DNA of 64,000 nt from Macrostomum lignano (GCA_002269645.1 NIVC01001971.1:1-64000), one strand, 5' to 3'; counted from the first letter of the stretch, positions 28,702 through 55,366 are shown. The notes: generated from the sequence alone by a model not told the origin. Numbers and translations are program-made.

Positions 28702-28704
28702 CAG

Positions 28705-31337: not shown

Positions 31338-33131
31338 CGTTCCGCAGTGGCGCAGTCAACTGGCCAATGGGGTTCTTTGCCGCACGCTAAACAGAAGCTG
31401 GTCCAGCAGCAGCACAGTGCGCTCTTGCCTCCGTTGTCAGCCGCAACGAGAAGGCGCCCGCACCGAGGCAGCGGGCAGAACCGCGACACGGGCAGACGGC
31501 GCTGCCAAGCCCGAAACGCCGCACCGGCCAGCGCTGGAAGCAGGCGATCAGGACAGAACCACAGCAGGACGGCACCGTCAAGCGGAGTGCGGCAGCCGCT
31601 GCTTGGACACTCAACGCTGGCAGCACCTGCGCTAAGAGCCGTAGTCACGTGTCTCACCCAGCAGGCGTTGCAGAATCGGTGCCGGCAGCCTCCCAGAGCG
31701 GTGGATCGCTTTGAAAACTTCGCAGCTGAGCTTGTCCGCATCAGATTGTTGCAAATGCCGCACTCGATCCCTGCGGAGTCGATGCTATCCTCGAGAGTGA
31801 CAGTAGCCGATGCGGAGAACATTGGCAGAGCTCTAATCGCGGCCACTCTCGCGTCTGTCTCGTTCCAGACTTCGGTGCGGCACCAGCCAACTGGGACCTG
31901 GCCGTACTGCGGCTGGTACACCACCAGACCTCTGGTGCTAGTCGGCCCGGGAGTCAGCAGACCGCGAAGGTACTCAAACGGATCCGACTTGTTGGCAAGC
32001 TTAGCAGCGGAAATTCGTCGATGCCTCATCGAGTCCGAGTTAGCTGCGGCCACAATGTGCCTCATCGACAGTTTAGTAAAGCCGTTCGCTTCGCTGATGA
32101 CCTCGAATGCAACTGACTCACAGAGGTTTTCCTGCAGAAGCACCGCAAACTTCCGCGGCTGCGAACTGCTCATACAGAGAGCATCAGTACCAGCGAAAAT
32201 CCACTCGAGTCGCTCCGGCAAGACCAGGTGCGACTTTACGTTTAAAATTGGACGTTTCTGCAAAAGAACAGAATCGATATGGCCTGATAGAGCACCCGGG
32301 GCTGTAACCTCTTCGGCGGCTTGGTCATCTTCAGCAACCAGAATCCAATCGTCTTGCTCAGTTGTCCCTTCGGGCTCTACCTCGAACGGCAAGAGAGGCT
32401 TTCCATTCACCGATGACTGCGACCCAGGCTTGACACGCATCGCATCGAACACGGTCGGAGCGGCTGATCGATCTGACGCGGTCAATTCATCAAACGACTC
32501 GTCCGCTTCGCTCTCGTCCGCAGAGTCCTCGTAATCGACGCTGTTGAAGTCGCAATAGTCGTCCTCAATTAGCGCTTGGCCTCGACAGTTCAAGCGTCGT
32601 CTCTGTCTTCCGCAAGCACGACTATGACAGCTGTCATCAATCAGCCGCGAGTGAGGGATCTTGTTCGCCGCTCCACCGGTCGGCTTTCGAATTTCAACGA
32701 GAACTTCCGTTCGTCTGTCACTGTCCAGGCGCAACGTTTCGGCGTCTTCGAGCTCCGATTTCGGCATTTCAAATGCTCGGAGCATCGATTCACGATTTAC
32801 TTGACCGCGATGGCCACCGAAACTGACGAGTGCTCGAGCTTGCCGAGCATGCTCAACCTGGCTGCTGAATGAAACCTTGCCACCTCGCAGCTTCGACTCG
32901 CTGTTGAGTCGACTTCGCAGCTCGTTAGCAGCCAGGCGCATGTAGTCGAAATTGGTTGCCAAGCGTCTGGTGGCGAGCTTGCCTCTGCCCTGCGGTCTCC
33001 ACTCGGTGTCAAGCAGGGCCAGGCTGTAGTTGCGCAGGCTTCTGTCTCCGCTGTTGCACTGATTGGCAATCTGGTCCTGCATGTCCCAGCGTGACTTCTT
33101 GTTGAGCGAGTAGGCCACTCTGAAGTCGTAG
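31338..33131 (-). CDS. Ariadne-like RBR E3 ubiquitin ligase, exon 2 (N-terminal extension, RING1, IBR)
   Basis: TTGCAG acceptor (33133-33132), GTGAGT donor at 31337. RING1 CGIC..CRHRFCNAC..CPSSGC; IBR CPLPRC..CCCWTSFCLAC..HWPVDC. Phase 2 to 2. Confidence 0.88.
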
Positions 33132-33260
33132 CTGCAATTGTAAATTGTTATTTTCTTTTTTGAAAAGCTTTCGAATGCATGAAGAATAATATAACTAACG
33201 ATAATAATTGATTACACCTGCCCCAATTGGGCCAGATTTACAACCGACAGCTCAGCCGCA

Positions 33261-33480
33261 GCTATTGCGCGGCGCATCTGAAGGCTGCGTACGGCTGTTC
33301 AGTCCAAGGACTGGGGGGGTCGCCACACACAGCCTCAATTACCCCAGCTAATGCCGGCACCCATTTTACAGCTGGGTTAACTGAAGCAATGCAGAGTTAA
33401 GTGTCTTGCTCATGGACGCGAATCGAACCCCGACCTTCAAGTCGTAAGTCCGACGCTCTAGCCACTGGGCTACAACCCCC
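33261..33480 (-). mobile_element. tRNA-derived SINE, copy 1 (internally deleted), in intron 1 of the nested RBR gene
   Basis: Minus strand begins GGGGTTGTAGCCCAGTGGCTAGAGCGTCGGAC (A box) and has GGTTCGATT (B box); body is homologous to the copy at 37732-37965. Confidence 0.8.
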
Positions 33481-33588
33481 TTTTAGAAACGACGACTTAA
33501 TTAGGACGGAAACTTCGTTTGTAAGAAAGCTTTATTGGAAAATAAACTACGGAGTTGGGGATTGACTTTTGATTTGTTCCACACTTAC

Positions 33589-33875
33589 TCATTGTCAGCC
33601 AAGCAAATCCGGTCCAATTCGCTATGGTTCGCATTGGGCTTTGAGATCAACCTTTTGGTCGGCTCTCTGCAGTACCGCTTGCTGTCGTACGGTGAAACTT
33701 CAAATGAGACTATACCGCAGTTTCTCATCTCCTTGTTAATCCTGTGCGTTCTTCGCATCGTGTTGCCGTTCTTGAATCTGACCGGGCCGTCTCCTTGGTT
33801 GAGGGGTTGTAAGGAGGCGCTGGCAGCTCTTGTACTAGCAGATTTTCTAGCTCTGCGACGCCTTGACAATCCCAT
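33589..33875 (-). CDS. Ariadne-like RBR E3 ubiquitin ligase, coding exon 1
   Basis: ATG at 33875 (MGLSRRRRARKSAS...NCGIVSFEVSPYDSKRYC), GTAAGT donor at 33588. Phase 2 matches the acceptor at 33131. Joined CDS is 287+1794+715 = 2796 nt, 931 aa with no frameshift. Confidence 0.72.
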
Positions 33876-34341
33876 GCCTCTTGCAGAAATAGTAGTTTTC
33901 TCCTTGCTGTTGCCTAATTCGCTGGTGTGTCCTTGGCTTGCTTGTCTTCTCAATCGGAGCAAATTGTGCCCGAGACGTCAACTGTTTTATAGTGTAGTTC
34001 CAAACGTTGCAATACGCATGACTCCTGTTCTATTTATAGACCACAGATGCCCAGTGCAACTGTTGGCTGGGGTGATCCTGCAATGTTCTAAAAATAGCTC
34101 ACCCTGTTTGTGTCTCCCAATCTAGCGCAAGAGCAATGACAGTATTTGGTAAAAAGTCCGTCACTGGTATTTCTATTACTGACAGTAGAAAAGTTGAGTT
34201 TTTCGTATTTTTAATTGGATTTACTCCTCATTTGTATCTTTTCTTGGGAGTACATACCGGTAGTAAAATTTAATGGTATCAAATATTAACAAAATTGGTT
34301 TTCCATAAATTATTTAAGCGAATTTGGCATCATTTTGACTG

Positions 34342-36200
34342 TATGGCTGGGACTGGCATGGCTGGGACTGGCACAGCTGGGACTGGCACAGCTGGGACTG
34401 GCACAGCTGGGACTGGCATGGCTGGGACTGGCATAGCTGGGACTGGCATCGCTGGGACTGGCATAGCTGGGACTGGCATAGCTGGGACTGGCATAGCTGG
34501 GACTGGCATCGCTGCGACTGGCATCACTGGGACTGGCATCACTGGGACTGGCATCGCTGCGACTGGCATCGCTGGGACTGGCATGGCTTGGACTGGCATG
34601 GCTGGGCATCGCTGGGACTGGCATGGCTGGGACTGGCACAGCTGAGACTGGCACAGCTGGGACTGGCACAGCTGGGACTGGCACAGCTGGGACTGGCACA
34701 GCTGGGACTGGCACAGCTGGGACTGGCATCGCATCCCTGAGACTGGCATCGCATCCCTGAGACTGGCATCGCATCCCTGAGACTGGCATCGCATCCCTGA
34801 GACTGGCATCGCATCCCTGAGACTGGCATCGCATCCCTGAGACTGGCATCGCATCCCTGAGACTGGCATCGCATCCCTGAGACTGGCATCGCATCCCTGA
34901 GACTGGCATCGCATCCCTGAGACTGGCATCGCATCCCTGAGACTGGCATCGCTGGGACTGGCATGGCTGGGACTGGCATCGCTGGGACTGGCATGGCTGG
35001 GACTGGCATCGCTGGGACTGGCATCACTGGGACTGGCATCGCATCCCTGAGACTGGCATCGCTGGGACTGGCATGGCTTGGACTGGCATGGCTGGGCATC
35101 GCTGGGACTGGCATGGCTGGGACTGGCACAGCTGGGACTGGCATGGCTGGGACTGGCATAGCTGGGACTGGCATAGCTGGGACTGGCATAGCTGGGACTG
35201 GCATAGCTGGGACTGGCATAGCTGGGACTGGCATCGCTGCGACTGGCATCACTGGGACTGGCATCACTGGGACTGGCATCGCTGCGACTGGCATCGCTGG
35301 GACTGGCATGGCTTGGACTGGCATGGCTGGGCATCGCTGGGACTGGCATGGCTGGGACTGGCACAGCTGAGACTGGCACAGCTGGGACTGGCACAGCTGG
35401 GACTGGCACAGCTGGGACTGGCACAGCTGGGACTGGCACAGCTGGGACTGGCACAGCTGGGACTGGCACAGCTGGGACTAGCACAGCTGGGACTGGCACA
35501 GCTGGGACTGGCACAGCTGGGACTGGCACAGCTGGGACTAGCACAGCTGGGACTGGCACAGCTGGGACTGGCACAGCTGGGACTGGCACAGCTGGGACTG
35601 GCATCGCATCCCTGAGACTGGCATCGCATCCCTGAGACTGGCATCGCATCCCTGAGACTGGCATCGCATCCCTGAGACTGGCATCGCATCCCTGAGACTG
35701 GCATCGCATCCCTGAGACTGGCATCGCATCCCTGAGACTGGCATCGCATCCCTGAGACTGGCATCGCATCCCTGAGACTGGCATCGCATCCCTGAGACTG
35801 GCATCGCATCCCTGAGACTGGCATCGCATCCCTGAGACTGGCATCGCATCCCTGAGACTGGCATCGCATCCCTGAGACTGGCATCGCATCCCTGAGACTG
35901 GCATCGCATCCCTGAGACTGGCATCGCTGGGACTGGCATGGCTGGGACTGGCATAGCTGGGATTGGCATAGCTGGGATTGGCATAGCTGGGACTGGCATA
36001 GCTGGGACTGGCATCACTGGGACTGGCATCACTGGGACTGGCATCGCTGGGACTGGCATCACTGGGACTGGCATCGCTGGGACTGGCATCACTGGGACTG
36101 GCATCGCTGGGACTGGCATCACTGGGACTGGCATCGCTGGGACTGGCATCACTGGGACTGGCATCGCATCCCTGAGACTGGCATCGCTGGGACTGGCACC
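34342..36200. repeat. composite satellite alternating 15-bp and 20-bp unit blocks
   Basis: 15-mer GCTGGGACTGGCA(TG/CA/TC/TA) and 20-mer GCATCCCTGAGACTGGCATC share the core GACTGGCA. 20-mer blocks lie at ~34725-34950 and ~35600-35925. Confidence 0.93.
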
Positions 36201-36234
36201 TGGCACGTTAGAAACCGCACCTGAACATCCGCAG

Positions 36235-36319
36235 AGCCGGTCAGAGCTTCGCCGAGTCGATCTGGTCGCGCCAGCGCTGGGCAGAGGCATTCAGTCTGGT
36301 GTGCAACCGCATCAATACC
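36235..36319 (+). CDS. unc-13: unc-13/Munc13, exon 8 carrying a calmodulin-binding-like motif
   Basis: CCGCAG acceptor, GTGAGT donor, phase 2 to 0. Encodes AGQSFAESIWSRQRWAEAFSLVCNRINT; WAEAFSLVCNRI has the W1-F5-V8 spacing of Munc13-1 WLRAFNKVRMQL. Confidence 0.78.
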
Positions 36320-36980
36320 GTGAGTCCAAATGCTTTCTGTTGAATGGTGCTGCAATGGATTACCGGCAGCTGTAACCCAGGCATACAAAACCCCAACTGG
36401 TGACTCTATAGCTCGGTTTGGAATCTGACCAACCTGAACAAACGCCATCTACTTTCAGCATCCCTAGCTCTCTCCATCATTAATCTATGGAGTAATTTGC
36501 TGAGCATATCAGCTCTTTCAGGCTCTCTAGAGAAGGAACTTCCTACCCAAGGGCCTCCGCAGTGGCCCAATCCCCATTGCGGAGTCTTTATCGGACTTTA
36601 GGGAGAGGAGAATTAGTGGGGAAGCGATTAGATTGGAAGCAAACAGTGGGGGGGGGGCTTAGGAAAGGAACGACTGACCGGCTTTCAAATTCTTCTGCTC
36701 AAGCGGACCTCCTTTTTTAACTTGCTGGCCCTAAATTCTTAGAGGAAAAAAGCAGCCTCGTACGAGCTCAGAGTTCATGCTCCACTCTCACTCTGTCCCT
36801 TCTCTCTCGCTCTCTTCAACGCCATCCCCGGGGGGGGGGAATTTCGGGGCATCAAGTTATCAAGCTGAAACGGCGGCAGCGCCACATTGTCGGAGTCGGA
36901 CCGGGGGACGTCAATTTCCCTTCAGTACTGGCTCCCCTGCCCTTGGGTCCAGTCAACTGATGGCACTTCATCTCGCTTGG

Positions 36981-36985
<5 letters not shown>

Positions 36986-37058
<73 letters not shown>

Positions 37059-37161
37059 AGACTGCCAGACAGACGGAGAGAAAGCAATTTGCTAGTTCAA
37101 ACTTGAAAGCCAGTCCAAGGAGTACCAGAGAGAGAAGGAGAGAGAGAGAGAGAGAGAGAGA

Positions 37162-37212
<51 letters not shown>
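36986..37212. repeat. (GA)n microsatellites, two runs
   Basis: GA runs at 36986-37056 and ~37135-37212. Confidence 0.92.
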
Positions 37213-37215
<3 letters not shown>

Positions 37216-37731
37216 AGAATCTGAAAATGGAACTTTGCCTATTTGCACACAAAATCCCTTGACAATGTTCTCAATAAATTCATGGCTAAACAGTTCTCTA
37301 AAGTCCAGATTTCTAGTCTGCAGTGTCCATGGCCAGACAGAGACTATAGCGGGCTGATGACTGTACTGGATAATACTGACTGCCTGGCTGCTAAATCGAG
37401 CGCGATTCGTTAAGGCGTAACGACTGAACCGCACTGCACTCTTCGTAATTACGTATCGACCGAATCGCCCAATAATATAAGCTAGTACGAATGCTGTGTA
37501 GTGTATATTTACAGTCTGAATAATCTGAAATTACCGCCCCAGAGGTCCCTACTGGCGCCAGAAAATTGTCTGTGACTACTAAAATCCAAAGCAGTGGACA
37601 GGGCAGCTCAGCGTCTTGACTCTCGCGTCACGACCCCCGAGCACTCACGAGCACTTCTTCATCGTCAATAATAAATAATTAATTGATTGCATCTGCATCT
37701 GCATCAACTGGGCTAGATGTGCAACCTTCGA

Positions 37732-37965
37732 GCTATTGCACGGCGTATCTGAAGGCTGCGTACGGCTGTTCAGTCTAAGGATTTGGGGACACCCTCAATT
37801 ATCCCAGCTAATGCTGGCACCCATTTTACAGCTGCTGGGTGAACTGAAGCAATGCAGAGTTATGTGTCTTGCTCAAGAACACAAACTGTTCCGAGTGGGT
37901 CGAGAATCGAACCCCCGACCTTTCAGTCGTGAGTCCGACGCTCTAGCCACTAGGCTACAACCCCC
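37732..37965 (-). mobile_element. tRNA-derived SINE, copy 2 (more complete)
   Basis: Minus strand: GGGGTTGTAGCCTAGTGGCTAGAGCG (A box), GGTTCGATT (B box), then CTTGAGCAAGACACATAACTCTGCATTGCTTCAGTTCACCCAGCAGCTGTAAAATGGG, reminiscent of the MIR/CORE-type central domain. Confidence 0.82.
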
Positions 37966-39676
37966 TCATCGTCAGGCAATGTCCACAGAGTTGGCCCTAA
38001 CAAGCATGAGTATAGCATAGCAGAAGCTTTCAGCGTGAAACCCAGCATTCATGAGGTGACACCGCGGACTCGAAGCTATGATGCCTGTTACGAGGATCTC
38101 ACGCGTTACAGCTCCACCGCTTGTCATTCCCTGGATCAATCATTCATCTACCGTCGTCTTCGCTTGGGTGCCAACCAATAGGGATAATATAGCTTTGTCA
38201 ACATGCGTTAAGTAAGGAAAAACTCTCCGAGTCTTGACACTCCCCCCCCCTAGATCGTACACTCAGCTTTCCTCAACCTATCCTATCAACATGCTTCGCT
38301 GCCTCTCCAGCCCCCGTGACCCCGCTCTGATCAATAAATAGCTCAGAAGTTCATTCTGAGGTTGGAGAGCGCATAAAAAAAGAGAAAGCCACACTGCAAA
38401 GGCGTCTCTCCCCCCCCCAAGCCTTTGCCATTTCATTCTCACTGGCTTCGCCGTCTTCCGCTTTGGCAATCGGCGGCAGCGTCATTGACAGAGAGTTTGT
38501 GCGCCATCGAATGCGGCAGGGTGTGCCCTGGCTACTCTGCTCCCCGCTACCTCTCTCCCCATCCCTCCTGCCTCACCATCGCTGTTAAAAGTACACAGGA
38601 CACGGGGGGGATAAAGTGGCTTGACCATTCACCTTAGGAAATGAGCATGATTGAGATAGAAGTGATGACGAATGACGACGGGAATAAACTTACTGCATCG
38701 TTCGCTCCCATAAAGCCTAAAAGTTAGCCCCCTCAAAATTGGAGCCATATTGCAGATTCCAATTTTCTATTTATCTCTACCGAAAATGCTTCCAAGCTGC
38801 ATCTAGCAGCCTAATCCCACAGGCTGATTGCTCGCATTTAGTGGATCAGATGAAGAAGCGCAGGCAGCTGCGAAGGGATGTGCGCGCGACAGCTATCAGC
38901 TCAAGATGCCACTTCTTGCCATCCTATGGGGAGCTGCCAGTGCATCCCTATTCCTTCCTGTCATCGGCTTCTTGCTCGCGCCTCGCCCCAGCCTCGCCCT
39001 CGCCCAGAAAGAAGGGCTATGAGAGATGGCCACTAGGAGAGGGGGAGGGGCATGGCTGCTCCAGACCGCCCAGGCCTCTGTCACTATAAAACCACGCCAG
39101 CACACGGCACTGGTGGCAGCAGTTATCATCTCTCTCTCCCTGTCTCGTTCGCCAGCCTCAAGACAAACCGTCCCTCTGAATTATCGGCAACTGCTGAGAG
39201 TCAAACTGCTTCAGCACTAAGCTGTGGACTATAGTTTCCTTTGTCCTCTACCGCCTGCTGGTTGAGACGACTTTGGAAGGCTCACCTCTAAAAACTGAGA
39301 CAGAGAAAAGCCAAGGAAGGAGGCTGAGGGACAGAGCGGAGGAACACCGGTTGAAGACCTTTCTCCCTGTCTCTTTCTCAAGGCCGGCCTAAAAGTTTTC
39401 TTCCCAAGTCATCCGACCTCGCTGAGCTTCCTATACTTTTCTATTCCGCCTCCCTATACTCCCCAAGGCCCTCCTTCTGTCTCCGTTTTCTCGCCAACCA
39501 GCGCTCTCGCACACTCGGGAGGGAATTAGTGCGGCACCCTCCCCCCAGCCCCGTGCCTCGTCCCCACACACACACGCGCGCGCCCTACTGGTGGAGAGGG
39601 ACTTTTTTTATCGCGCGCCAAACAGAGAGAGAGAGAGAGGCAGAGATAGCAGTAGCAGCGGCAGCCAGAAGGCCGC

Positions 39677-39792
39677 ATGGGAATCGGCCCCAGCTCACTG
39701 TGCCCACCGTTGCATCCGTCAGCGCCGCCCCAATCGAGCTTAACCTTCGCCCTGAGGCCAGGCCGCCCAGGCAGCAGCAGCAGCAGCAGCAG
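39677..39792 (+). CDS. unc-13: 5' part of a giant low-complexity exon (probable alternative unc-13 N-terminus), interrupted by the retrotransposon
   Basis: ATG at 39677 reads MGIGPSSLCPPLHPSAPPQSSLTFALRPGRPGSSSSSS. Removing the element and one (CAG)7 copy joins it in frame to 44491-47191 (116+2701 = 2817 nt, 939 codons). Confidence 0.6.
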
Positions 39793-39834
39793 CCCGTTGA
39801 TTCCCATAGGAGTCGAGCGCCTCCTGGCGCGGTC

Positions 39835-41385
39835 ATGGGGGGTGCCTCTTCGCGGCGACCCGGACGTAGCGCCAAACCCCCTTTCCATAGGTCACCTCAC
39901 TATCACCTGGCTAGAGCCCTCGGCTCTGCCAGGTCGGTGATCGCTCAAGTTGCTCCTCTGCTCGTGCTGCTTCTTCTTCTGCTGGGCTGCGTCGAACTCA
40001 ATCCGGGCCCCATCTGCACGACCTGCTCCAAAGCGATTCGCACCACCAACTCTCCGCAATGTGCCGCTGCCTCTTGCGCTGAGCGTTGCCATCTACAGTC
40101 GCGCTGCAGCGGTCTCTCGCGGCTCCAGCTGGCTGACCCCGCGCGTATCTGGCTGTGCCCCAGGCACAGCGCTGCCCCGCGGGGCGCGTCCGCGGGCAGG
40201 CCCTCCCGGCCGCCCCGGCCCCCGCCCCCGGCTCTGCGCAAGCGCCAACGATCGACTTCTGCGCGGCTTGCGGCACACGCATTCGTTCCGGCACTGCTCC
40301 GCTCAGATGCTCCCACAGCGACTGCCCACTCCTTGTGCACCGTTCTCGCAATTGCAGTGGCCTCTCTCGTTATCTCGGCGCCCCTGCTTGGACCTGCCAG
40401 GCGCATTGTCCAGCCCCTCAGCGCTCAATTGCCGGTCGCCATCCGGCCAGGCCCCACGAACTGCGCCCCCTCGCCCGCACCACCTGCTCCAAGTGCGGCA
40501 CCAGCATTCGTCAGGGCGCCCCTCGCCTCACCTGCTCCGTCTGCGGCGGCACTAGCCACAAGAGCTGCTCTGGCCTCACGCGCGAAGGCGCCAACTCAGC
40601 TCTCCGGGGAGCCTGGCTCTGCAAATCCTGCTCCCCGCGGGCACTTCCAGCCAGTCGATCCGTCACCTTGGAGATCACTCCGCGTCTTCTCGTGTACGCT
40701 CCACTGCCCTCACGGTCTGCTCCTCTACGCTTCCCTCGGCTAGCAGCATTCGCTTTCTGCAATGGAACGCCGACGGGCTATGTCCCAAACTCAGTGAGCT
40801 CATGGACAGACTTAAAGAGCTCCACATTGACGTCGCTGTCATCCAGGAGACGAAACTCAACTCCAGAATTCAGCTCCCGTCGACCCCCGGCTACTCCCAA
40901 GTCAGAGCGGACAGGCCAGGGACTCAGTCTGGAGGCGGTCTCCTCTTCCTCATCAACGAGCACCTCTGCTTTCGTCGCGGACCGTACACCTACTCGGCCC
41001 CGGTTGAGGTCCTACAGGTTGACATCCAAATCTCCAAGCGCTCCTGGCTCAGAGCTGTTAACCTGTATGCGGCGCCGCTTCGCTCTTGCGAAGACCCTGT
41101 TCCCGCTTCGGAATGGAACTGCGTCCCAACCGACAGCAACACGATAGTTTTTGGAGACGTCAACGCGCACTCTCCGCTGTGGGATGGCTCCCAACCGCCC
41201 GACGCGCGTGGCGACTCCCTCGTGGACTGGAGCACTTCCCACAACATGTGCTTTCTGAATGATGGTTCCCACACCCGGGTGAACAGAGCCACTGCAGGCC
41301 TCAGCACCCCGGATGTCACGGCTGCCCCGCCGGGCTGGGCTGAGAAGGCCGACTGGAGCGTCGATGAAGATCTCGGGCGGATCAC
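39835..41385 (+). CDS. Retrotransposon polyprotein, N-terminal part: 2A-like peptide, three PHD-like fingers, APE endonuclease (split by single-base deficits)
   Basis: ATG at 39835; LLLLLLGCVELNPGP; three CxxC..C..H..C..WxCxx(C/H) modules; APE motifs IRFLQWNADGL, AVIQETKL, GGGLLFLI, FGDVNAHSPLW and PDVT. Frames run 1, 3, 2. Confidence 0.8.
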
Positions 41386-44300
41386 TTGCCTATCATCGTC
41401 CGGTTCCACACGGCTACCATCCAGCACAAGGCTCCTGGCCGCATGGTTTGGCGCAAGAAGGGCGCCGACTGGCAGGGCTTCAGCGCCGCCACCGAGGAAG
41501 CCTTCCGCAACCTCCCTAAGTCCCGCCTGTCGGTTCACAAACGCATCCTTCGCTTCAATCAGATCATCCTGGAGCAGGCGCACAAACACATAGGCAAAAT
41601 CCGGCTTAAGAGACAATCCAAGCCCTGGCTTACCCAAGAAGCTAAAGCTGCCATCAAGCGCCGCAACCGCCTCCGGCACGAAGTGCATCATAGGCGTCAA
41701 GAGTGGCTCGACGCTTGCATCGAAGCTTCCCGGCTCACCCGCGACGCCAAAGACTCTGCCTGGAAGGAATACCTCGCCGACCTGCACCACAGCCATGATT
41801 CGAGCCAGGCGTGGAAACTGATCAGGTCCCTCAGCGGCTCCCCGGGCTCCTCCGCGCCCAACGAGGCTCTGCTCGTGGGTGAACGCTCTCTCACTGACAA
41901 CCGCAGCAAAGCCAACGCCTTCGCCAGCCACTATGCTTCTGTCTGTCGCCTCAAGATCGACAGTGACGACCGGGCGGTCGTCAGGCGCGCCAAAGCCATT
42001 CTGCGGAGCAACGCGCCGGCTACCGCGGAGACCCCACCCATCACCATGGAGGAGCTTCGCGGAGCGATTGCTCATCAGAAGACTAACGGCGCCGCCGGCC
42101 CGGACGACATTTCCCCGCGCATGTTGCAACACCTGGGGGACGCAGCCCTCTTAGAGTTGCTGTTTATCTTCAACATGTCGCTGCACACCGGATCCCTGGG
42201 CCACATCTGGCGTTGCGCCATTATCATCCCGCTTCTTAAAGCCGGCAAGTCGGCCAGAGAGATCTCCAGTTTCCGCCCAGTGAGCCTCACCTCCTGTGCC
42301 GTTAAACTTCTGGAGCGAATCATCGACACCAGACTGAGACACCTCGCCAACTCTCGTGGCTGGATCTCGCCGGCCCAGGCTGGCTTCCGTGCGATGTACT
42401 CGTGCGAGGACCTGTTACTCAGAGTTGTGCAGGACATTAGCGACGGCTTCCAACTCAAACCGGCCGAAAGGACCATTCTCGCCCTCCTGGACTACTCTAA
42501 GGCGTTCGACAAAGTGTGGCGCGAGAAGCTTATCACCATCCTCGCTGATAAAGGTGTCCCGCTTGCTTACATTCGCTGGATTTCGTCCTTCCTCAGCGAC
42601 CGCCGCGCTCGGGTTTCCTTCAACGGGTCCCTCAGCAAGTCCAAGCCGATGCGCCAAGGCCTTCCGCAGGGATCCGTCCTGGGACCGCTGCTATTCACGC
42701 TTTTCATTGACCCTGTCGTCTCCGTTATCCCTGAGGATGTTGGCATCACGTTATACGCTGACGACATCTCTCTCAGATGCAGGCACCGCAACAAGCTCAC
42801 GGCCGCCTCCCGCCTTCAGGCCGCCCTCAACGCTGTTACCGCCTGGAGCTCCTCCAACAAGATGGTGCTCAACGCTGACAAGAGTGAAATCGCCTTCTTT
42901 TCTACCGACCCCAGCGAAGCGAGCTGGAGCCCCTCGCTCTTCATCGGGCATTCCCAAGTTCGGCACTGCAGCACTCCTAGACTCCTAGGCATTACCCTGG
43001 ACCGTACGCTCAGCTTTAACGCGCACGTCAACGACATCTGCAGCAGAGTCCTGTCCCGCTGCCGCATGCTGTCCTGCCTCGCGGCTCGGGACTGGGGTTG
43101 GCGCAAGGAGCGCCTTCGCGGCGTCTACCTGGCTATGCAGCAGAGCCTTCTTAACTACGCGGCCCCGGCTTGGCAACCTTGGCTTTCCAGCACCTCCTTC
43201 GAGCGCCTTGAGCGCGCGCAAAACCAGGCCCTCAGAATCGTCACGGGCTTGCACCGCTCGGCGCCGCTTGACGCTGTGCACCTGGAGGCCGGCATCGGCA
43301 GCTACAGGAACACCAGCGACCGCCTTTGCCTCATCGCCAGGGAACGCGCGCTCAGGCTGCCCAACGACCATCCTCGCGCCATCGCCCTCTCGGGCACCGT
43401 GCAACACCGGCTCGCCCGCAGTAGCTGGAGACTCCGCTCGGCTCAGCTTGCCAATGGCCTTGGCATTGATCTCACGCCGCGTCTGCCGCTCACACCGGCC
43501 TTCCCATGCCCCTGGCTGGACCAACATCTTCCGGCGATCCTAGCTGACAATCCTTTGCCTCCGGCCACCACGCCCCCGTTGGAGCGCTGTCTTGCCGCTC
43601 TCGACGTCATCCGGTCTCACCCGGCTGAGCTCGTCATTTACTGCGATGGTTCGGCGGCCGGCGGCTCCGAGGCTGGCGGGGCGGCCGCTGTGGTCACCAT
43701 CGGAGACCCGGCAGTCCCGACGACCGTGGAAGCCCGCACGTCCGCTGGCAGCCGCTACACCAGCTCCTTTGAAGAGGAACTCCGCGCTCTGGTCCTAGCC
43801 CTCGACTACCTCCGCTCGCACCCCACGCGCCCTGCCATCATCTGCTCTGACAGTCAGTCTCTTCTGCGCGCCCTTCAGCGTCCCTTCAGCCGCCTGGCCT
43901 CTTCCCTCCGCTTCCCGCACAACTGCCGCGCTCTCCTGTGGGTCCCGGGTCATGTCGGCATTCCGGGCAATGAACTCGCGGACCGCGCTGCTAACTCCGC
44001 TGCCGCCAACGCCGATGAAGCACCGCGCCCCAGCATCAGTTTTCCCACTGCCGCCTCGGTGATCCGCCGCACTCTGGTTGACAAGCCGGTCACCCACGCG
44101 AGATCTCGTCTCACCTATGCCTCCGCCGACGCCGAAAAGGAACGTCGGCTTATTACTAACCGCAAAGACGCTGTCCTTCTTGCCCGGCTGCGCTCCGGCC
44201 ACTCCAGCCTCTTCGGAGCCTTCCGCGCCCTCATGGACCCCACGGTGGATCCGACGTGCCAAAGGTGCTTCCTCGAACCAGACACCCTTGAGCACTGGAC

Positions 44301-44437
44301 AGCGTGCCCTGCTCTCGAGGCCGCCCGCCGTCGCTTCATTGGAGCTCCGCTCTCCCTCAGCAACTTGTCCGATTACCCTGATGGTTTGGTCGCGCTGGCC
44401 AGGTTCTGCATGGATCCTGGGCGCGTTTGGGCCAACT

Positions 44438-44439
<2 letters not shown>
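41386..44439 (+). CDS. Retrotransposon polyprotein, C-terminal part: reverse transcriptase, RNase H and C-terminal Cys/His motif
   Basis: 1017-aa uninterrupted ORF with FRPVSLTS, QAGFR, LDYSKAFDKV, GLPQGSVLGPLLF and YADD; RNase H YCDGS..EEELRAL..SDSQS..WVPGHVGIPGNELADRAA; CQRC..EHWTAC. Confidence 0.93.
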
Positions 44440-44471
<32 letters not shown>

Positions 44472-44490
44472 GCAGCAGCAGCAGCAGCAG

Positions 44491-47191
44491 CTCAAACTGC
44501 TCAGCCAATAGTGATCCAGCTGCCGACTTCTCGGCCGCCACCCCAGCAGTCGGCCGCCCCAACGCCGCCGGCGATTCTCAAACCTATACAAGCAGCCGAG
44601 CCCGGATGACCGCAGCCAGCAACAGTGCCAGGCTGAGGCCGCTAAATCGACAACGCGCGGTGCAACATCAGAATGAAGCGGACAGCCTCCGCTGGTGGCA
44701 GCCGCCGCCACCGCCGCCGCCGCCGCAGCTGTTATCAAACGAACTCGTCCAGCAACCAAAACTATCAGCTACGCTAATTATCAGCAACTGCTGCGCCGAT
44801 AGCCAAATGTCGTCCATTCACCTGCGCAATCACCCGCTCAGCCCGCGGCCGTCGCGCTCCCCCAGCCCGGACCTCATGCCCGGCTACACACCGCCGCTGC
44901 CTGCGCCTGCCGCCGGTCTCTCCTGGACAGCCAGCTCGAGTCCCGGCGGCAGCAGCACCAATCCCTACCTGGCCAGGTCTCGCTACCTGACCGCCGCTGC
45001 CAACTCCGACCTGCACGGCCCGCTGACTGTCGACACGCGGCACCAGCCGCCTCATCCGCTGTTCCACCAGCCCGAGGCCTCCGTCAAGCGGGACAAATTC
45101 GCCAATGCCGGCTACTCTTCTGGCTACTATTCGAACTCGAATGCCGCCATCGACAATAATAGCAGCTTTCAGCTGATGCCGATGGAGTCGGCCACCTCCT
45201 TCGAGTCCGGAGACGATGCCGAATCTATCGAGGCTGAGCTGCTTCAGCATCACCGCGGAGCTCAGCAGAGGCAGCACTGCCCCCGGCACGGCGGCCCCAC
45301 CGATCCCATGGACCCCTTCGGCCAGTTCGCCGACTGCGTATGCCCGCACCCGCGCTACGCCGGTCCAGCAGCCGCCCGCATCAACAGCGACTTTGACGAG
45401 TCGGACGGCAACGCCGGCGAGGAGGACGCAATGGCGATGGCGGCCGCGCTTAGGCCCCCGACTGTTCGGGTCTTCTTCGACCCGAACTGGGAGTCCGCCA
45501 GGGAGACCGACATCCTCGGCGGCGTCGGCTGCAGCGGCGCCGGTATCGACTCACCGGACGCCGATTCTAGTAGCGACTTGGCGGCCCTGTCCGATTTCCA
45601 GCGTCGCTATCCGGTTCACCTGGACGACAAGGACGAGCGCAACACCTGGTCGTCTTCGTCGACAGCGACTTCGTCGGCTTCGTCCTCACCGACAACTCTG
45701 CTGGGCAGGAGCAGCTCCGCCTACTTGCGCGTCGGCGCCCCGTTTACCATGCGCGGCGCCTCCGATCGGGATAGAAGCGTCGAGGACGTCACTAAACTGG
45801 ACGACATCGACGTGCGCTCGATCAAATCCTCGCATTCGCAGGACTGCATCACCTGCGAGATCCTGGCATCTGCTGTGCCACATGACGTCGACTCGACGAC
45901 TGCTAAACTGAGCGAAGTGCCGAACGGAAGCGGCGCGCCGCCAGGGACCTACGGTGCCGGGGCCGAGGAGCGGCGCAGCCAAGGTCTGGAAGTGTCGGTT
46001 ACCGAATGCCCAAACGATCGACTTTCACCGTACGACAATCTGGATAATATCATACACGAGGAGGATGAGGAACTGGTTTCCTCTCCAGACTCCGTGCCCA
46101 GCGTGATCAACAGTCAACAGGCTGCGGCGGCGGATTCTCGTCACGGAGAACTCGCCAAATTCAGCAGCAAGTCGAGGCTGCCGCCGACCGGAGCGATCTC
46201 CGTGGCCGCCACCGTGCATCGTCGGCCGCCGGACGCTACGACCCAGCCTGCGGTTTCGACATCGGCAACGGCAGGTTTTCCAGCGGCGTTGCCAGTTTCA
46301 TCTTCGATGGCAACACAGCCAGCACCGTCTCCAATGGCAACACAGCCAGCACCGTCTCCAATGGCAACACAGCCAGCACCGTCTCCGATGGCAACACAGT
46401 CAGCGGAGTCTTCAACGGCAACACAGCCAGCACCGTCTCCAATGGCAACACAGCCAGCACCGTCTCCGATGGCAACACAGCCAGCACCGTCTCCAATGGC
46501 AACACAGCCAGCACCGTCTCCGATGGCAACACAGCCAGCGGAAACAGTGCCACCAGCGCAGCCCCCAACACCATCGAAGCCTCCACCGCCGCGTCCACCT
46601 CCACCACAGCGGGCGACTCCAAACAGGCAGCAAGCGCAGCCGCAGCCGCAGCCTCTACTAACTCCGTCATCAGCCGCTGAATCTGACCAGCCAATGCAGC
46701 CGCCGCTGTCTCAGGGACGAGCGCCGCATCTGTCGAACTCGCAGCAAACCGACGCCTCGCCGGTCGGTCCGGCAAGCGGCGAGCCGGCTACTGCAGCCGG
46801 CAAGAAGGACAGCCTCGAGTGCGGCGCATCGTCGGGCTACGCGTCCTACGAGAGCCGCTCCAGCGAGCGCCTGGTGGACCGAATGGACCATCAGCAGCAG
46901 CAGCGCCGACCGTCAGAGGGTCCCGAGGCCTCGACGGAGCTCGCGGAGGACGCGGACAGTCAAGCAGCCGCCGCAGCCGGCCAGAGTGGCAACAAATTCG
47001 CCGGCTTCGTTCGCTCGCATTTCGTCAAATTGATGTCGTTCGAATCGGAGGACGGCGCGGGCGCGGCGCCAACGGCGGCAGCGGCGGCCAATTCCGCGGC
47101 GTCGGACGCTCCCGGAGCCGCGCTAGGCGCAGGTGCGGGCTTTCGGCGCCAGCTGCTCAGGAACGCCGCCTCGTCTGAGTCCTCTGGACGC
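44491..47191 (+). CDS. unc-13: 3' part of the giant low-complexity exon (probable alternative unc-13 N-terminal exon)
   Basis: GC-rich open frame with an internal 27-bp coding repeat (ATQPAPSPM, ~46310-46535). A phase-0 GTAAGC donor at 47192 is compatible with the phase-0 acceptor at 55968. The unspliced ORF runs on to a stop at 47308. The link to unc-13 rests on position and phase, not homology. Confidence 0.62.
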
Positions 47192-47994
47192 GTAAGCCTC
47201 GCTAATTCTCCTCGCCCCGCCCCTTCTTCCCCCTCGATAAAGAAATTGCCTCAAGGCCCGCTGCTGGTCTACCGTGGGGAGCTCCCGAGGCAGCGCAAAC
47301 AGCCCTAGGGAGTTGGCCGGGACGGGACCGAGTCGCGGAGAGGGTCGGGGGAGAGAAGTGCGCTCGCTTGGCCAGTTAGGCCGAAACAGGAAGGCGAGGT
47401 TTTCAGTTTCCAGCTAGGGGGCTTCTAGTTAGCCTTCCCTGGTCAACCCCCCACCGCCGAGCTTTGAACAGTCGATCGCCCACTCTGATGGCGCCTCGTC
47501 AATTTATCATCCAACACGCTGAGCTCACTCTCGCACTGTCTCGCCCACGCCTTAGTCAAGTGCCGCGTCCAGTTCGCACCAGCAGCAGCACCACTACCAT
47601 TGAGCTGGCTCTTCTTCCTTTTTCGGCTTCTCTCCCCCGACCCCCGACTCGTCCTTCAATTCCCAATTTCAGCGATAATAGAAGCATAGCGCCAGACACA
47701 AACAGGGCTTATTTGAGCGTGTATAATGGCTAGATTAGGCCGGCTGAGACAGCGAAGGAATTGGAAAAGCCCCGATGGGGATAGGGGAGAGAACGGGAGT
47801 TGAGGAGTTGAGTGTCTCGTATGACTTTTAGGCTGGCTCCCAGCGTGTCCATCAGACTGAGAGTCCTGGATGGCCTAGGCGTCGGGAAAGGGTGTGCTTC
47901 TTCACCCCGAATAACCCTTACTAGCTGAGAGTTGAATAGTGCAGAGAGAGCTTCAGAAAGACTGAGAGAAAAGTACCAGTATGTTTTTGTGTGG

Positions 47995-49132
47995 GGTCAT
48001 TGTTGGATAGACTCACTGCTGGGTAGGCTCATTGTTGAGTAGTCTCATTGTTGGGTAGGCTCATTATTGGGTAGGCTCATTGTTGGGTAGGCTCATTATT
48101 GGGTAGGCTCATTGTTGGGTAGGCTCATTGTTGGGTAGGCTCATTATTGGGTAGGCTCATTGTTGGGTAGACTCATTGTTGGGTAGACTCATTGTTGAGA
48201 AAACTCACTGTTGGGTAGTCTCATAGTTGGATAGACTCATAGTTGGGTAGCCTCATTGTTGGATAGAGTCATTGTTGGGTAGACTCATTATTAGTAGAAT
48301 CATTATTGGTAGACTCATTATTGGTAGACTCATTATTGGTAGACTCATTATTGGTAGACTCATTATTGGTAGACTCATTATTGGTAGACTCATTATTGGT
48401 AGACTCATTATTGGTAGACTCATTATTGGTAGACTCATTATTGGTAGACTCATTATTGGTAGACTCATTATTGGTAGACTCATTATTGGTAGACACATTA
48501 TTGGTAGACTCATTATTGGTAGACTCATTATTGGTAGACTCATTATTGGCAGACTCATTATTGGTAGACTCATTATTGGTAGACTCATTATTGGTAGACT
48601 CATTATTGGTAGACTCATTATTGGTAGACTCATTATTGGTAGACACATTATTGGTAGACTCATTATTGGTAGACTCATTATTGGCAGACTCATTATTGGT
48701 AGACACATTATTGGTAGACTCATTATTGGTAGACTCATTATTGGTAGACTCATTATTGGTAGACTCATTATTGGTAGACACATTATTGGTAGACTCATTA
48801 TTGGTAGACTCATTATTGGTAGACACATTATTGGTAGACTCATTATTGGTAGACTCATTATTGGTAGACTCATTATTGGTAGACTCATTATTGGTAGACT
48901 CATTATTGGTAGACTCATTATTGGTAGACTCATTATTGGTAGACTCATTGTTGGGTAGACTCATCTTTGAGTAGACTCAATGTCGGGTAGGCTCAATGCT
49001 GGATAGACTCATAGTTGGATAGACTCATAGTTGGGTAGTCTCATAGTTGGGTAGTCTCATTGTTGGGTAGACTCATAGTTGGATAGACTCAATTTCGGGT
49101 AGACTCAATGTTGGATAGACTGACTCGCTGTT
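47995..49132. repeat. 15-bp minisatellite with degenerate longer-unit flanks
   Basis: Homogeneous core TGGTAGACTCATTAT (~48290-48950) flanked on both sides by variable ATTGTTGGGTAG(G/A)CTC units. Confidence 0.93.
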
Positions 49133-49741
49133 GGATAAGTACGAGTCATATTGATTGTTGGCTTATGCTGACTGTTACGTGTACTCAAATAACATTGAAC
49201 AGACACACAGAAAATAAGTAAAACAGGCCTAAAAAAGCAGTTGGTATTAGTTAATATAGAAGCTGGGGGAGGAAATCTTTAATCTACAGTACCAATATTG
49301 CAATCTTTTTCTCTTCTTGCACTCCTCTTGCCTCGTGCCCAGGTGAGTGGCAGTGCAGGACAGAGATAACTCACTAAGATTTCGCTATATTAAGATCGGA
49401 TTTATGGGAACTTTATCCCAAATTCCTTCGCTTATGTCCGCTGTCACGTCTGCCCACCTGATTGTAAAGTTAGTGAGGCCCGATTTACAGTCAACTTGTC
49501 ATAAAATAAGAATCTCGCTAATCCTCTCTGATGGAAGTTGCTTGCATGTATGGTAAGGGAAAAAAGGATTTTAAGGATTTAAACAAAATGCGTGGGAGGG
49601 AAAAACAGTATGCGGCTTAGTTTTGGAAATTGACACAAAGACGATTTAAGTATCCTTTTATCGACTTTGTTCTTAAATTGGCATTGAGGGAAGTTCATGA
49701 CTGATAGGCCGACAATGTTGTCTGCCGGTGAGGGGCTGATA

Positions 49742-50770
49742 AATGACTGGTAGGAGCTAATGAAGGACTAGTAGGAGCTAATTAAGGACTGGTTTGAGCT
49801 AATGATAATTAAGGCCCGGTAGGAGCTAATTAAGGACCGGTAGGTGCTAATTAAGGCCCGGTAGGAGCTAATTAAGGACCGGTAGGAGCTAATTAAGGAC
49901 CGGTAGGTGCTAATTGAGGCCCGGTAGGAACTAACTAAAGACCGGTAGGAGCTAATTAAGGACCGGTAGGAGCTAATTTAGGCCCGGTAGGAACTAATTA
50001 AAGACCGGTCGGAGCTAATTAAAGACCGGTAAGAGCTAATGAAGGACTAGTAGGAGCTAATGAAGAACTGGTAGGAGCTAATGATAATTAAGGACCGGTA
50101 GGAGCTAATTAAGGACCGGTAGGAGCTAATTAAGGAACGGTAGGAGCTATTTGAGGCCCGGTAGGAACTAACTGAAGACCGGTAGGAGCTAATTAAGGAC
50201 CGGTAGGAACTAATTAAAGACCGGTCGGAGCTAATTAAAGACCGGTAAGAGCTAATGAAGGACTGGTAGGAGCTAATTAAGGACCGGTAGGAGCTAATTA
50301 AGTACCGGTAGGAGCTAATTAAGGACCGGTAGGAGCTAATGAAGGCCCGGTAGGAGCTAATTAAGTACCGGTAGGAGCTAATTAAAGACCGGTAAGAGCT
50401 AATGAAGGACCGGTAGGAGCTAATTAAGGACCGGTAGGAGCTAATTAAGGACCGGTAGGAGCTAATTAAGTACCGGTAGGAGCTAATTAAGGACCGGTAG
50501 GAGCTAATTAAGTACCGGTAGGAGCTAATTAAGGACCGGTAGGAGCTAATGAAGGACCGGTAGGAGCTAATTAAGGACCGGTAGGAGCTAATTAAGGACC
50601 GGTAGGAGCTAATTAAGGACCGGTAGGAGCTAATTAAGGACCGGTAGGAGCTAATTAAGGACCGGTAGGAGCTAATTAAGGACCGGTAGGAGCTAATTAA
50701 GGACCGGTAGGAGCTAATTAAGGACCGGTAGGAGCTAATTAAGGACCGGTAGGAGCTAATGAAGGCCCGG
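49742..50770. repeat. 21-bp minisatellite, ACCGGT variant
   Basis: Unit GGACCGGTAGGAGCTAATTAA. Confidence 0.94.
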
Positions 50771-51254
50771 TGTGTCTGTGTGGGTTTTTCGCCGATTTGG
50801 CCTACTACGCGCCAAAATCCATAAAAACAAAAACATCAAAGCCCGGTATATTTAGTTTTTTTATTACTCTAGATTTTTTCAGTCATCTTGGCTTGTTTGG
50901 TTGTTTCAGAAAAACTAACAGCCAGCCTCGTGTTGCTTGTGCATTTGCAAATAATCTAAATGGCTTTCAGTGGGTTGTTATTCCGCTACATCAATATTGC
51001 AGCATCTCTCTTTGCAGTTGTGCCTCCCCTTCTCATGTTTCTGAGAGGGATTTTTCCCAGCCGTCCTTCCAGTTCATCCTCCATTTGCCTTCAAGGAAGC
51101 TGTGGGTTGCAGCAAAAAAGAAGAAAAAAAAGCTGAAGTTGTTGTTAGTCACAGAAACCGCCACCCCTCTATTGGTGGAGGAGCTTCCTAATGAAAATTT
51201 AAAGAAATTTCTATGAAAACTTTTTTTGCAAAGAACTGCTTGCAACGAAGAAAC

Positions 51255-51900
51255 GTGACAAAGAGAAGGAAAGGGAGAGAGGAAGAGGAGAGGGAGACAA
51301 GGCAAGAGGGAGAGGAGGAGAGGGAGAGAAGGTGAGAGGGAGAGGAGGAGAGGGAGAGAAGGTGAGAGGGAGAGGAGGAGAGGGAGAGAAGGTGAGAGGG
51401 AGAGGAGGAGAGGGAGAGAAGGAGAGGGAGAGAAGGTGAGGGAAAGAAGGTGAGAGGGAGAGGAGAGGGAGAGAAGGGGGAGAAGAGAGGGAGAGAAGAT
51501 GGAGAGGAGAGGGAGAAGAGAGCGAGAGGAGAGAGAGAGAAGGTGACGGAGAGGAGGAGAGGAGGAGACGGAGAGGAAGAGAGGGAGAGAAGGTGAGAGG
51601 GAGAGAATGTAAGAGGGACAGGAGGAGAGGGAGAGAAGGAGAGGTAGAGAAGGTGAGAGGAGAAGGAGAGAAGCGGAAGGAGAGAAGCTGAGGGAGACTT
51701 GAGGGAGAGTTGAGGAAGAGGAGGAGAGGGAGAGGTGGAGAGGTAGGGAAGGAGAGGGAGAGGAGGAGAGGGAGAGAAGGTGCGGGAGAGAAGGTGCGGG
51801 AGAGAAGGTGAGGGAGAGGAGAGAGGGGAGGAGAGAGGGAGAGAGGAGAGGGAGAGGAGAAGGGAGAAAGAGAGCAGAGGGATGGGAGGAACAGAAGCAG
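51255..51900 (+). repeat. polypurine (GA-rich) low-complexity tract
   Basis: Almost exclusively A/G on the + strand, with local 27-bp repeats GAGAAGGTGAGAGGGAGAGGAGGAGAG. Confidence 0.9.
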
Positions 51901-52624
51901 AAAGAAGGCAGTCAGGGGCAGAGGGAAGGGTACGGGTGAGAGGGAGTGAGAGACCGCTAAGATCTTTCAATATAAATCAGGCTGGATCAGAGGAACTCTC
52001 CAAGCGCTCTGCTCTTTTTAATCCCAATTTTCTCCGTCATTTTTTAATCCCAGGATTAGTGGGATCAGATGGCCCTTCGTTGTAGCTGCGGAAGCAGACT
52101 AAAAGCAGATTATTGTAGAGATGCGAAAGCGATGAGGCTAAACAGCAATGAGGAAAAAACCCTCATAATCCCTGGGAAAGATTTGAGCCCTTATTATATT
52201 GAACCCATCTATTCCTATAAAATTGAAAACTCTTATTATAAATATAAATTGAATATTTTGTGATCCATACCTGGAGGCATGGGTTACGCATTCCAGTTAG
52301 AGTTGTCAGCATATCTGTCAATTACTGTGAATTCCGCGATGCAAGGCTCGGAGGCCTGACCCAATATCGGTGTGTTTCACTGAGGCTGAAAGAAAAAGTT
52401 CTTTTGTATTGTTAAAGAACCGCCTCATCGGTCGCATAAGAGCGACGACTTAAAAGTTGAGTGACTTTTTCAAAGGATTAGCCACAACTGCAATTCTTAA
52501 TCCGCTAGTATGTGGGTGGGATGTGGGGTTATCCTGACTGACTGAAGTCATCAAGGCACTTAAAGGACTCTGTGTCCTTTTAGGACTTGTGCTGCCGTGT
52601 TACTGATGCAGATGACTTTGATGG

Positions 52625-53295
52625 CAGCTGACACTGACACTAAAGCAGCTGACACTTTAGGATGCTGACACTTGAAGATGCTGAAACTTAAGCAGCAGAC
52701 ACTTGAGGATGCTGACACTTGAGGATGCTGTCACTTGAGGATGCTGTCACTTGAGGATGCTGTCACTTGAGGATGCTGTCACTTGAGGATACTGTCACTT
52801 GAGCAGCTGACACTTGAGAATGCTGACACTTGAGGATGCTGACACTTAGGATTCTGACACTTTAGGATGCTGACACTTAGGATGCTGACACTTTAGGATG
52901 CTGACACTTTAAGATGCTGACACTTAAGCAGCTGACACTTGAGGATGCTGACACTTCAGGATGCTGACACTTTAGGATGCTGACACTTAGGATGCTGACA
53001 CTTTAGGATGCTGACACTTTAAGATGCTGAAACTTAAGCAGCAGACACTTGAGGATGCTGACACATCAGGATGCTGTCACTTGAGGATACTGTCACTTGA
53101 GCAGCTGACACTTGAGAATGCTGACACTTGAGGATGCTGACACTTAGGATTCTGACACTTTAGGATGCTGACACTTAGGATTCTGACACTTTAGGATGCT
53201 GACACTTAGGATGCTGACACTTTAGGATGCTGAAACTTTAAGATGCTGACACTTAAGCAGCTGAAACCTAAATTAAGATGCTGACACTTAGGGAT
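52625..53295. repeat. 15-17-bp degenerate minisatellite
   Basis: Unit GAGGATGCTGACACTT, with a duplicated block (~52782-52900 vs ~53082-53200). Confidence 0.9.

Positions 53296-55083: not shown

Positions 55084-55366
<283 letters not shown>

Follow-up and report, generated by a model that had tools for sequence, protein, structure and literature searches.

A LINE-split giant reading frame as a candidate alternative first exon of unc-13 in Macrostomum lignano

We analyzed 64,000 nt of one strand of Macrostomum lignano DNA (GCA_002269645.1, NIVC01001971.1:1-64000; hereafter the window), in which sequence matches identify N-terminal exons of an unc-13 gene. Downstream of these exons lies a giant open reading frame (ORF) of 939 codons, split by a long interspersed nuclear element (LINE), which is, or recently was, protein-coding sequence. 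The best explanation of this region, and one that we hold with about even confidence, is that it would serve as an alternative first exon of unc-13, with a promoter of its own, in the intron between exon 8 (ending at 36319) and a putative shared exon at 55968. Transcription would start about 30-36 nt 3' of a TATAAAA at 39085, and a leader of ~560 nt without any ATG would precede a translation start at ATG 39677. The exon would encode ~939 disordered, Ser/Ala/Pro-rich residues that include no C2A domain and have two short helices at their end. Its phase-0 donor at 47192 would be joined to the 55968 exon and then to the exons shared with the C2A isoform, leading to the C1-C2B-MUN-C2C core. Each N-terminus would then direct or adjust the common priming machine in its own way, as is the case for bMunc13-2/Munc13-3, UNC-13S, fly Unc13A/B and the Aplysia forms, and the alternative exon would exchange the calmodulin-type motif of exon 8 for a helix of its own near the junction, which would fit the conserved position of the calmodulin site.

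The unc-13 locus and its giant reading frame

The host gene is identified as unc-13 from the sequence of its C2A exons, and exon 8 carries a suggestive motif. A composite of the exons at 21485-21574 and 22060-22207 matches the C2A domain of Munc13-1 in the PDB ('UNC-13 homolog A'; 2cjt, E=4.6e-10; 2cjs, E=3.4e-9), a third C2A exon at 24268-24388 is colinear, and the splice sites are sensible at all three. In the frame with a phase-0 end, exon 8 encodes ...SRQRWAEAFSLVCNRINT (in a longer reading, AGQSFAESIWSRQRWAEAFSLVCNRINT) and contains the motif RW(1)AEAF(5)SLV(8)CNRI(12), the sole occurrence of W..AF..[VILM] in the six frames of the window. The spacing W-x3-F-x2-V is the Trp-anchored 1-5-8 pattern of the calmodulin site of Munc13-1 and ubMunc13-2 (PMC7017353, PMC9282427). 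When exon 8 is joined to the 55968 exon (SVSCADDGSNFD...), the first aromatic residue to follow, an F, is at position 25, the canonical position being 26. We regard the exon 8 motif as suggestive of the unc-13 calmodulin site, one residue short of the canonical 26. A search of PDB sequences with the joined peptide of exons 8 and 9 returned no match, and neither did tblastn of the window with calmodulin-site peptides. An earlier note on this DNA had assigned the locus to unc-13, an identification that is borne out by the C2A exons and agrees with the unique W..AF..V motif of exon 8.

The giant ORF (39.7-47.2 kb, + strand) lies 3' of the C2A exons (21.5-24.4 kb) and of exon 8 (36.3 kb) on the same strand, and contains neither a C2A domain nor any other Pfam domain. 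The C1 domain was not found in the window by tblastn with a C1 peptide query, so the C1-C2B-MUN-C2C core would lie further downstream, beyond base 64000, and the giant ORF would occupy an unc-13 intron in the sense orientation.

Because the frame is broken in the assembly, the 939-codon exon is a reconstruction of the empty site: deletion of 39793-44490 (4,698 nt, a multiple of 3) leaves 939 codons from ATG 39677 to 47191. The part before the insertion (39677-39792) is in the same frame (mod 3) as the 900 codons past the LINE. The GTAAGC donor at 47192 follows directly after codon 939, and read-through would add 38 codons, up to a TAG at 47306-08. The nearest in-frame stops 5' of the ATG are the TAGs at 39647-49 and 39653-55. 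Direct reading of the sequence thus agrees with what the earlier note had reported of the TATAAAA, the ATG at 39677, the LINE-free frame and the donor at 47192; the continuous frame that it described from ATG 39677 holds once the LINE is removed, but not in the sequence as assembled.

Frame 0 of 44492-47191 is free of stops, against counts of 12-28 in the remaining five frames. We made 2,000 second-order Markov shuffles of this sequence and took the longest ORF of each, in whichever frame it lay: the median was 305 codons and the maximum 747, compared with the 900 codons observed. A codon model trained on a neighbouring 800-codon ORF (11476-13875) gives the first two thirds of the 900-codon ORF a score of +0.17 to +0.19 per codon in the correct frame, similar to the score of the reverse transcriptase (RT) of the LINE, whereas both off-frames are negative. 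The repeats within the ORF (CCG, CAG and a 27-nt minisatellite without indels) all have unit lengths that are multiples of 3, while the 577 nt 5' of the ATG contain four dinucleotide repeats and no trinucleotide repeat. The stop-free length beyond that of the shuffles, the frame-specific codon usage and the restriction to repeats of 3n together indicate that the 939-codon frame codes for protein or did so until recently; that it arose by chance alone is very unlikely. The observed/expected ratio of CpG is 1.14 in the ORF and 0.55-0.77 in the flanks, from which we draw no conclusion.

The sequence that precedes ATG 39677 has the features of a leader. No ATG occurs in any frame between 39052 and 39677 (625 nt), which is the longest ATG-free gap in the window outside tandem repeats; 7.2 ATGs would be expected in this length, and the probability of finding none is 0.0004 (Markov) or 0.0002 (shuffle). 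The gap starts 33 nt 5' of the TATA box and ends at the ATG of the 939-codon frame, and it resembles a 5' untranslated region (5'UTR) selected against upstream starts rather than an intron. Dinucleotide repeats (GA, CA and TC) lie 5' of the ATG, with the GA repeat just upstream of it, and no pyrimidine tract can be read before the AGs at 39654-55 and 39657-58. Because of the ATG-free leader, the TATAAAA with its initiator-like sequence and the purine-rich sequence before the candidate acceptors, we prefer a first exon with a promoter of its own to a cassette exon. The internal promoter that the earlier note had proposed gains support from the TATAAAA, from the missing pyrimidine tract and from the 625-nt leader; its actual use, like the splice from 47191 to 55968 and the function of the two predicted helices, we infer from the sequence.

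At the 3' end of the frame, the donor hexamer at 47192 is the same as that of the donor of the 55968 exon, and its phase (0) is that of the end of exon 8 and of the 55968 acceptor. Given the window-wide density of GTRAG (1.14/kb), a phase-0 site would fall in the final 38 codons of an ORF with a probability of ~0.04. Neither AATAAA nor ATTAAA occurs in 47192-49500, that is, up to 2.2 kb past the read-through stop. Because the phase-0 donor is unique and no poly(A) signal follows it, we moderately favour splicing at 47192 over termination.

Points against the model and rival readings

Several observations weigh against an alternative unc-13 first exon. In the assembled sequence, the frame of ATG 39677 is discontinuous and stops at 39940, inside the LINE. 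The LINE itself carries at least two frame changes, so that its insertion may not be very recent, and an exon that is still open would then be puzzling. There is no clear codon signal in the last third of the ORF, which is repeat-rich and Pro/Ala/Gln-rich, and the score of the 38 codons before the LINE is uninformative, the stretch being short. The initiator-like GCAGTT is a partial match to the initiator (Inr) consensus TCAGTY, which is an arthropod consensus, and the spacing of 33-36 nt between the TATA box and the Inr is at the long end of the range. The depletion of GTRAG inside the exon is not significant alone (expected 1.5, P(0)=0.22). Past the donor, the ORF stays open for 38 codons of similar composition, with a GC content of 0.62-0.68 up to ~47400, which makes ~200 nt of exon-like sequence. 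The 55968 exon is a putative unc-13 exon. Finally, Pfam finds no family in the ORF protein, and a HMMER scan of 1.84 billion representatives with this protein returned 32 matches, none of them outside a repeat and Pro-rich tract, although this negative carries little weight.

The main rival reading, which we consider unlikely, places a separate gene of one exon within the unc-13 intron. Such a gene would use the same TATA box and ATG 39677, remain unspliced at 47192 and end after the TAG at 47306-08, giving a 977-residue disordered protein unrelated to unc-13 function. The promoter and leader features fit it equally well, and it would account for the Pro-rich composition and high GC that continue past the donor, as well as for the absence of any homology of the ORF to an unc-13 protein in the Pfam and HMMER searches. 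It does not fit with the absence of AATAAA and ATTAAA in the 2.2 kb after its stop, nor with the position of the sole GTRAG, which lies just before that stop in a phase that suits both exon 8 and the 55968 acceptor. In addition, the read-through segment has a codon score close to zero, and a layout with alternative starts is used by unc-13 genes in four phyla (PMC9282427).

The element that splits the frame bears on two further readings. It is a non-LTR (long terminal repeat) retrotransposon with Pfam matches to Exo_endo_phos (6.6e-9), Exo_endo_phos_2 (2.2e-11), RVT_1 (2.2e-34) and RNase_H (7.2e-11), a Cys-rich ORF1 and a CAA array detected by Tandem Repeats Finder (TRF). An apurinic/apyrimidinic (APE) endonuclease, RT, RNase H, a 3' repeat tail and a target-site duplication are all present, and the insert is a LINE. 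It lies 38 codons past ATG 39677, in the poly-Ser (CAG)7 tract. Since the target is a trinucleotide repeat, any placement of the duplication removes a multiple of 3, and the continuity of the frame is independent of the duplication length. Barring assembly errors, this LINE copy is not intact: the Cys-rich ORF1 motifs are split over two frames near 40150, and the endonuclease (frame of 40556) and the RT (frame of 41368) are in different frames. Neither AATAAA nor ATTAAA occurs on its sense strand, and there is no second copy of it in the window.

With its sense orientation, its endonuclease, RT and RNase H, its 3' repeat tail, its perfect duplication and its position inside an ORF, the element is like the LINE insertions in coding exons that produce null alleles. 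It differs from them in its target, a (CAG)7 microsatellite, so that the true length of the duplication is not fixable. The insertion of a LINE with a (CAA)n tail exactly in this microsatellite (39772-39792, 44438-44490) could reflect either a microsatellite-preferring element or slippage that masks the true duplication length. Because the frame stops at 39940, the LINE-bearing allele cannot make the 939-residue N-terminus from ATG 39677; if this allele were polymorphic, it would be a natural isoform-specific knockout.

It is quite improbable, in our judgement, that the ORF is not a working coding exon at all, being either a frame left open by chance or composition in low-complexity, GC-rich DNA or an exon or gene of the past that the LINE inactivated and that has not yet acquired stops. 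The physical split of the exon, with the ATG-39677 frame ending inside the LINE, would suit this reading, as would the frame changes of the LINE if its insertion is not new: by our own estimate, an open 2.7-kb frame would still be expected ~30% of the time at the apparent decay rate of the LINE. The absence of homologues and of a codon signal in the last third of the ORF point in the same direction. In contrast, a length of 900 codons exceeds that reached in any of the shuffles, codon usage is frame-specific throughout the first 600 codons, the repeats are of 3n only, and the lack of ATGs in the leader points to selection, past or present, on a 5'UTR.

We consider it still less probable that the LINE allele is fixed while the 900-codon frame is maintained and expressed, either from a start 3' of the insert (ATG 44606) or by removal of the element from the transcript. 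The region would then be a lineage-specific orphan unc-13 N-terminus with a convergent calmodulin-type helix, its 5' end remodelled by a retrotransposon. If the LINE is fixed, the open frame could be used only from a different start, such as ATG 44606; this is the first ATG in any frame past the stop in the LINE, it is in the 900-codon frame, and it would give a 900-residue product up to the read-through stop.

The least probable reading is the symmetric cassette exon of the C2A transcript that the earlier note had also allowed, entered via the AG at 39654-55 or 39657-58, left at 47192 and separating the calmodulin motif from the shared exon by ~945 residues: the variants from 39656 and 39659 are stop-free and multiples of 3 (2,838 and 2,835 nt) and exon 8 ends in phase 0, but a purine-rich GA repeat instead of a pyrimidine tract precedes both AGs, TAGs lie in frame at 39647-49 and 39653-55, the 625-nt ATG gap would be unexplained in an intron, and the W1-F5-V8 helix would be parted from the hydrophobic residue ~25 positions on, in the 55968 exon. 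Internal exons of 2.8 kb are, moreover, unusual.

Encoded protein and comparison with known unc-13 isoforms

The protein that the alternative first exon would encode has a Ser+Ala+Pro content of 42% and is predicted to be disordered. AlphaFold2, run without an alignment, gave a mean predicted local distance difference test (pLDDT) score of 35; the only secondary structure that it predicted is a pair of helices, both in the last 70 residues. In a motif scan of the 939 residues, helix 1 contains the protein's sole 1-5-8 hydrophobic pattern and one of its two 1-5-10 patterns. By analogy with bMunc13-2 (PMC7017353), helix 1 (KFAGFVRSHFVKL) is a candidate for a divergent calmodulin-binding site. 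In a hydrophobic-moment scan, the predicted helices did not stand out. At the other end of the protein, the start MGIGPS (39677-39694, + strand) fits the N-myristoylation pattern M-G-x-x-x-S/T by pattern matching only; if a lipid anchor on an unc-13 N-terminus were real, it would be functionally interesting.

Library searches detected no relatives of the ORF among the sequences that they covered, as would be expected for unc-13 N-termini, which are known to be poorly conserved; this result does not speak against the model. The 32 HMMER matches all fall on residues ~570-820 (the MATQPAPSP repeat and the flanking Pro-rich tract) and were rejected as low-complexity. A word-indexed protein search gave no match for the joined 977-residue ORF, for which low complexity probably filled the limit of 8,000 candidates, and none for a neighbouring 660-residue ankyrin/fn3 ORF. 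The positive control of this search, a clean C2A composite of 123 residues, failed as well (9 candidates, 0 significant); the word-indexed negatives, from a database of doubtful coverage for the host lineage, are therefore weak, and we do not count them against annotation or conservation. In exact-sequence look-ups, seven possible start variants of the ORF and of the LINE-free ORF were absent, and so were the controls, LINE ORF2 and the ankyrin/fn3 ORF. A PDB sequence search with the last 164 residues returned no match.

The precedent that the earlier note had invoked, alternative unc-13 N-termini on a shared core, is well founded in the literature. C2A-less forms of unc-13 arise from alternative promoters within introns in Aplysia, worm, fly and mammals (PMC9282427, PMC8762327), and according to the Aplysia study such isoforms appear to have evolved several times (PMC9282427). 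If the splice to 55968 holds, the proposed exon would by analogy be one more instance of this known layout, with and without C2A.

One close likeness in layout is to the brain isoform of UNC13B, bMunc13-2, and to Munc13-3, in which long, poorly conserved, largely unstructured N-termini without C2A precede a CaM-C1-C2B-MUN-C2C core (PMC7017353, PMC9282427). The former comes from the same gene as the C2A-bearing ubMunc13-2 (PMC7017353, PMC9282427). Each of the four mammalian Munc13 isoforms has a calmodulin-binding site immediately N-terminal of C1, conserved in position but not in motif type; that of bMunc13-2 is 1-5-10 (PMC7017353). The calmodulin sites of bMunc13-2 and Munc13-3 are divergent in type, and the giant exon has its sole 1-5-8 and a 1-5-10 pattern in a helix ~55-65 residues before the exon end. 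There are also differences: HMMER detected no sequence similarity to these proteins, no ELKS-binding or other known motif was identified in the giant exon, and this exon lies 3' of the exon with the calmodulin motif, so that the new isoform would lose the conserved motif.

In Aplysia californica, a single gene with intronic alternative promoters produces the forms Ac-unc13-A to D, of which one only has C2A (PMC9282427), a likeness to the gene proposed here. In one Aplysia form the putative calmodulin sequence is divergent, and another lacks the site (PMC9282427). The Aplysia forms are backed by a transcriptome, whereas the M. lignano exon is known from genomic sequence alone.

C. elegans UNC-13L and UNC-13S, and Drosophila Unc13A and Unc13B, are in each case isoforms of one gene that differ only at the N-terminus, which sets active-zone position and release kinetics (PMC8762327). 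Worm UNC-13L has C2A and the calmodulin motif, and UNC-13S lacks C2A (PMC8762327). The fly isoforms have no C2A at all (PMC8762327), in contrast to the M. lignano gene, and no sequence homology of the giant exon to the worm or fly forms was detected. Fly Unc13A carries a PxxP motif for the SH3 domains of RIM-BP (PMC8762327). A motif scan found KPPPPRPPPPQR-type SH3 motifs in the giant exon; such motifs are common in any Pro-rich sequence.

These N-termini matter because those of unc-13 and Munc13 set the place of the priming machine in the active zone as well as synaptic facilitation and depression. If the alternative first exon is real, it would be a further case of C2A-less isoforms evolving repeatedly, as has been proposed for bilaterians (PMC9282427), and gene models that skip the LINE-split exon would be corrected. 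The current understanding of unc-13 would be left unchanged.

Feature coordinates and neighbouring sequences

Table 1. Features of the unc-13 locus and of the giant reading frame in the window.
Feature	Coordinates	Strand	Basis or remark
unc-13 C2A exons	21485-21574, 22060-22207, 24268-24388	+	PDB match, colinear tblastn matches, splice sites
unc-13 exon 8	36235-36319 (about)	+	...SIWSRQRWAEAFSLVCNRINT, W1-F5-V8 calmodulin-type motif, phase-0 end before GTGAGT
ATG-free leader	39054-39676	+	putative 5'UTR from ~39118; (TC)5, (CA)5, (CG)4, (AG)8
TATAAAA, candidate TATA box	39085-39091	+	direct reading; 1 of 3 TATAAAA on + strand in 64 kb
Initiator-like GCAGCAGTT	39117-39124	+	candidate starts A39118 and A39121, 33-36 nt after first T of TATA box
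5' coding part	39677-39792	+	ATG + 38 codons, MGIGPSSLCPP...PGSSSSSSS, ends in (CAG)7/poly-Ser tract
Target-site duplication, left copy	39772-39792		(CAG)7, 21 nt
LINE (non-LTR retrotransposon)	39793-44469	+ (sense)	4,677 bp; Pfam domains, (CAA)10 tail
Target-site duplication, right copy	44470-44490		(CAG)7, identical to left, 21/21
3' coding part	44491-47191	+	900 codons without stop, Ser/Ala/Pro-rich, predicted disordered
27-nt tandem repeat	46307-46539	+	TRF: 8.6 copies, 91% matches, 0% indels; encodes MATQPAPSP repeats
Predicted helix 1, GNKFAGFVRSHFVKL	46988-47032	+	AlphaFold2, residues 833-847 of 900
Predicted helix 2, AGFRRQLLRNA	47135-47167	+	AlphaFold2; ends 8 residues before donor
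GTAAGC splice donor, phase 0	47192-47197	+	sole GT[AG]AG in 44470-47700
Read-through stop TAG	47306-47308	+	met if donor 47192 unused; 38 extra codons
Proposed shared exon	55968-56029	+	SVSCADDGSNFDAACTTDSR; phase-0 acceptor after pyrimidine-rich tract, GTAAGC donor

Besides these features, the unc-13 locus contains a large Pro-rich open frame at about 28700-29952 (+ strand), which follows a long (CT)n array, carries PPPLSPPSKPPPLPP repeats and ends at a CAG/GTGAGC donor. This frame probably represents the chief low-complexity exon of the C2A isoform, the one that separates the C2A domain from the calmodulin motif. Like the giant ORF, this N-terminal exon is large, Pro-rich and repeat-bearing, and it has no internal GTRAG.

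A minisatellite of ~2 kb with GGCATCGCTGGGACTGGCATCACT-type units (34300-36200, + strand) extends up to exon 8. Several of its frames are open, on both strands, and it gives rise to many long ORFs that are spurious. A dispersed repeat of ~240 nt, probably an element like a short interspersed nuclear element (SINE), occurs in the same orientation in two unc-13 introns (33260-33481 and 37731-37966, + strand; 78.5% identical). ARAGORN found no tRNA gene in 33000-39700.

Further upstream, an 854-codon open frame at 11314-13875 (+ strand; ATG 11476) has a poly-Gln start, a weak Pfam match to fn3 and ankyrin-like repeats. We rejected it as a part of unc-13 because of the fn3 match, the ankyrin-like repeats and its position upstream of the C2A exons, and regard it as a separate gene, which we take to resemble ANKFN1 or fly wake. 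At 1291-1638 (+ strand), an exon matches the tubulin-tyrosine-ligase family (TTL/TTLL; Pfam E=5e-17), indicating a third gene at the left edge of the window.

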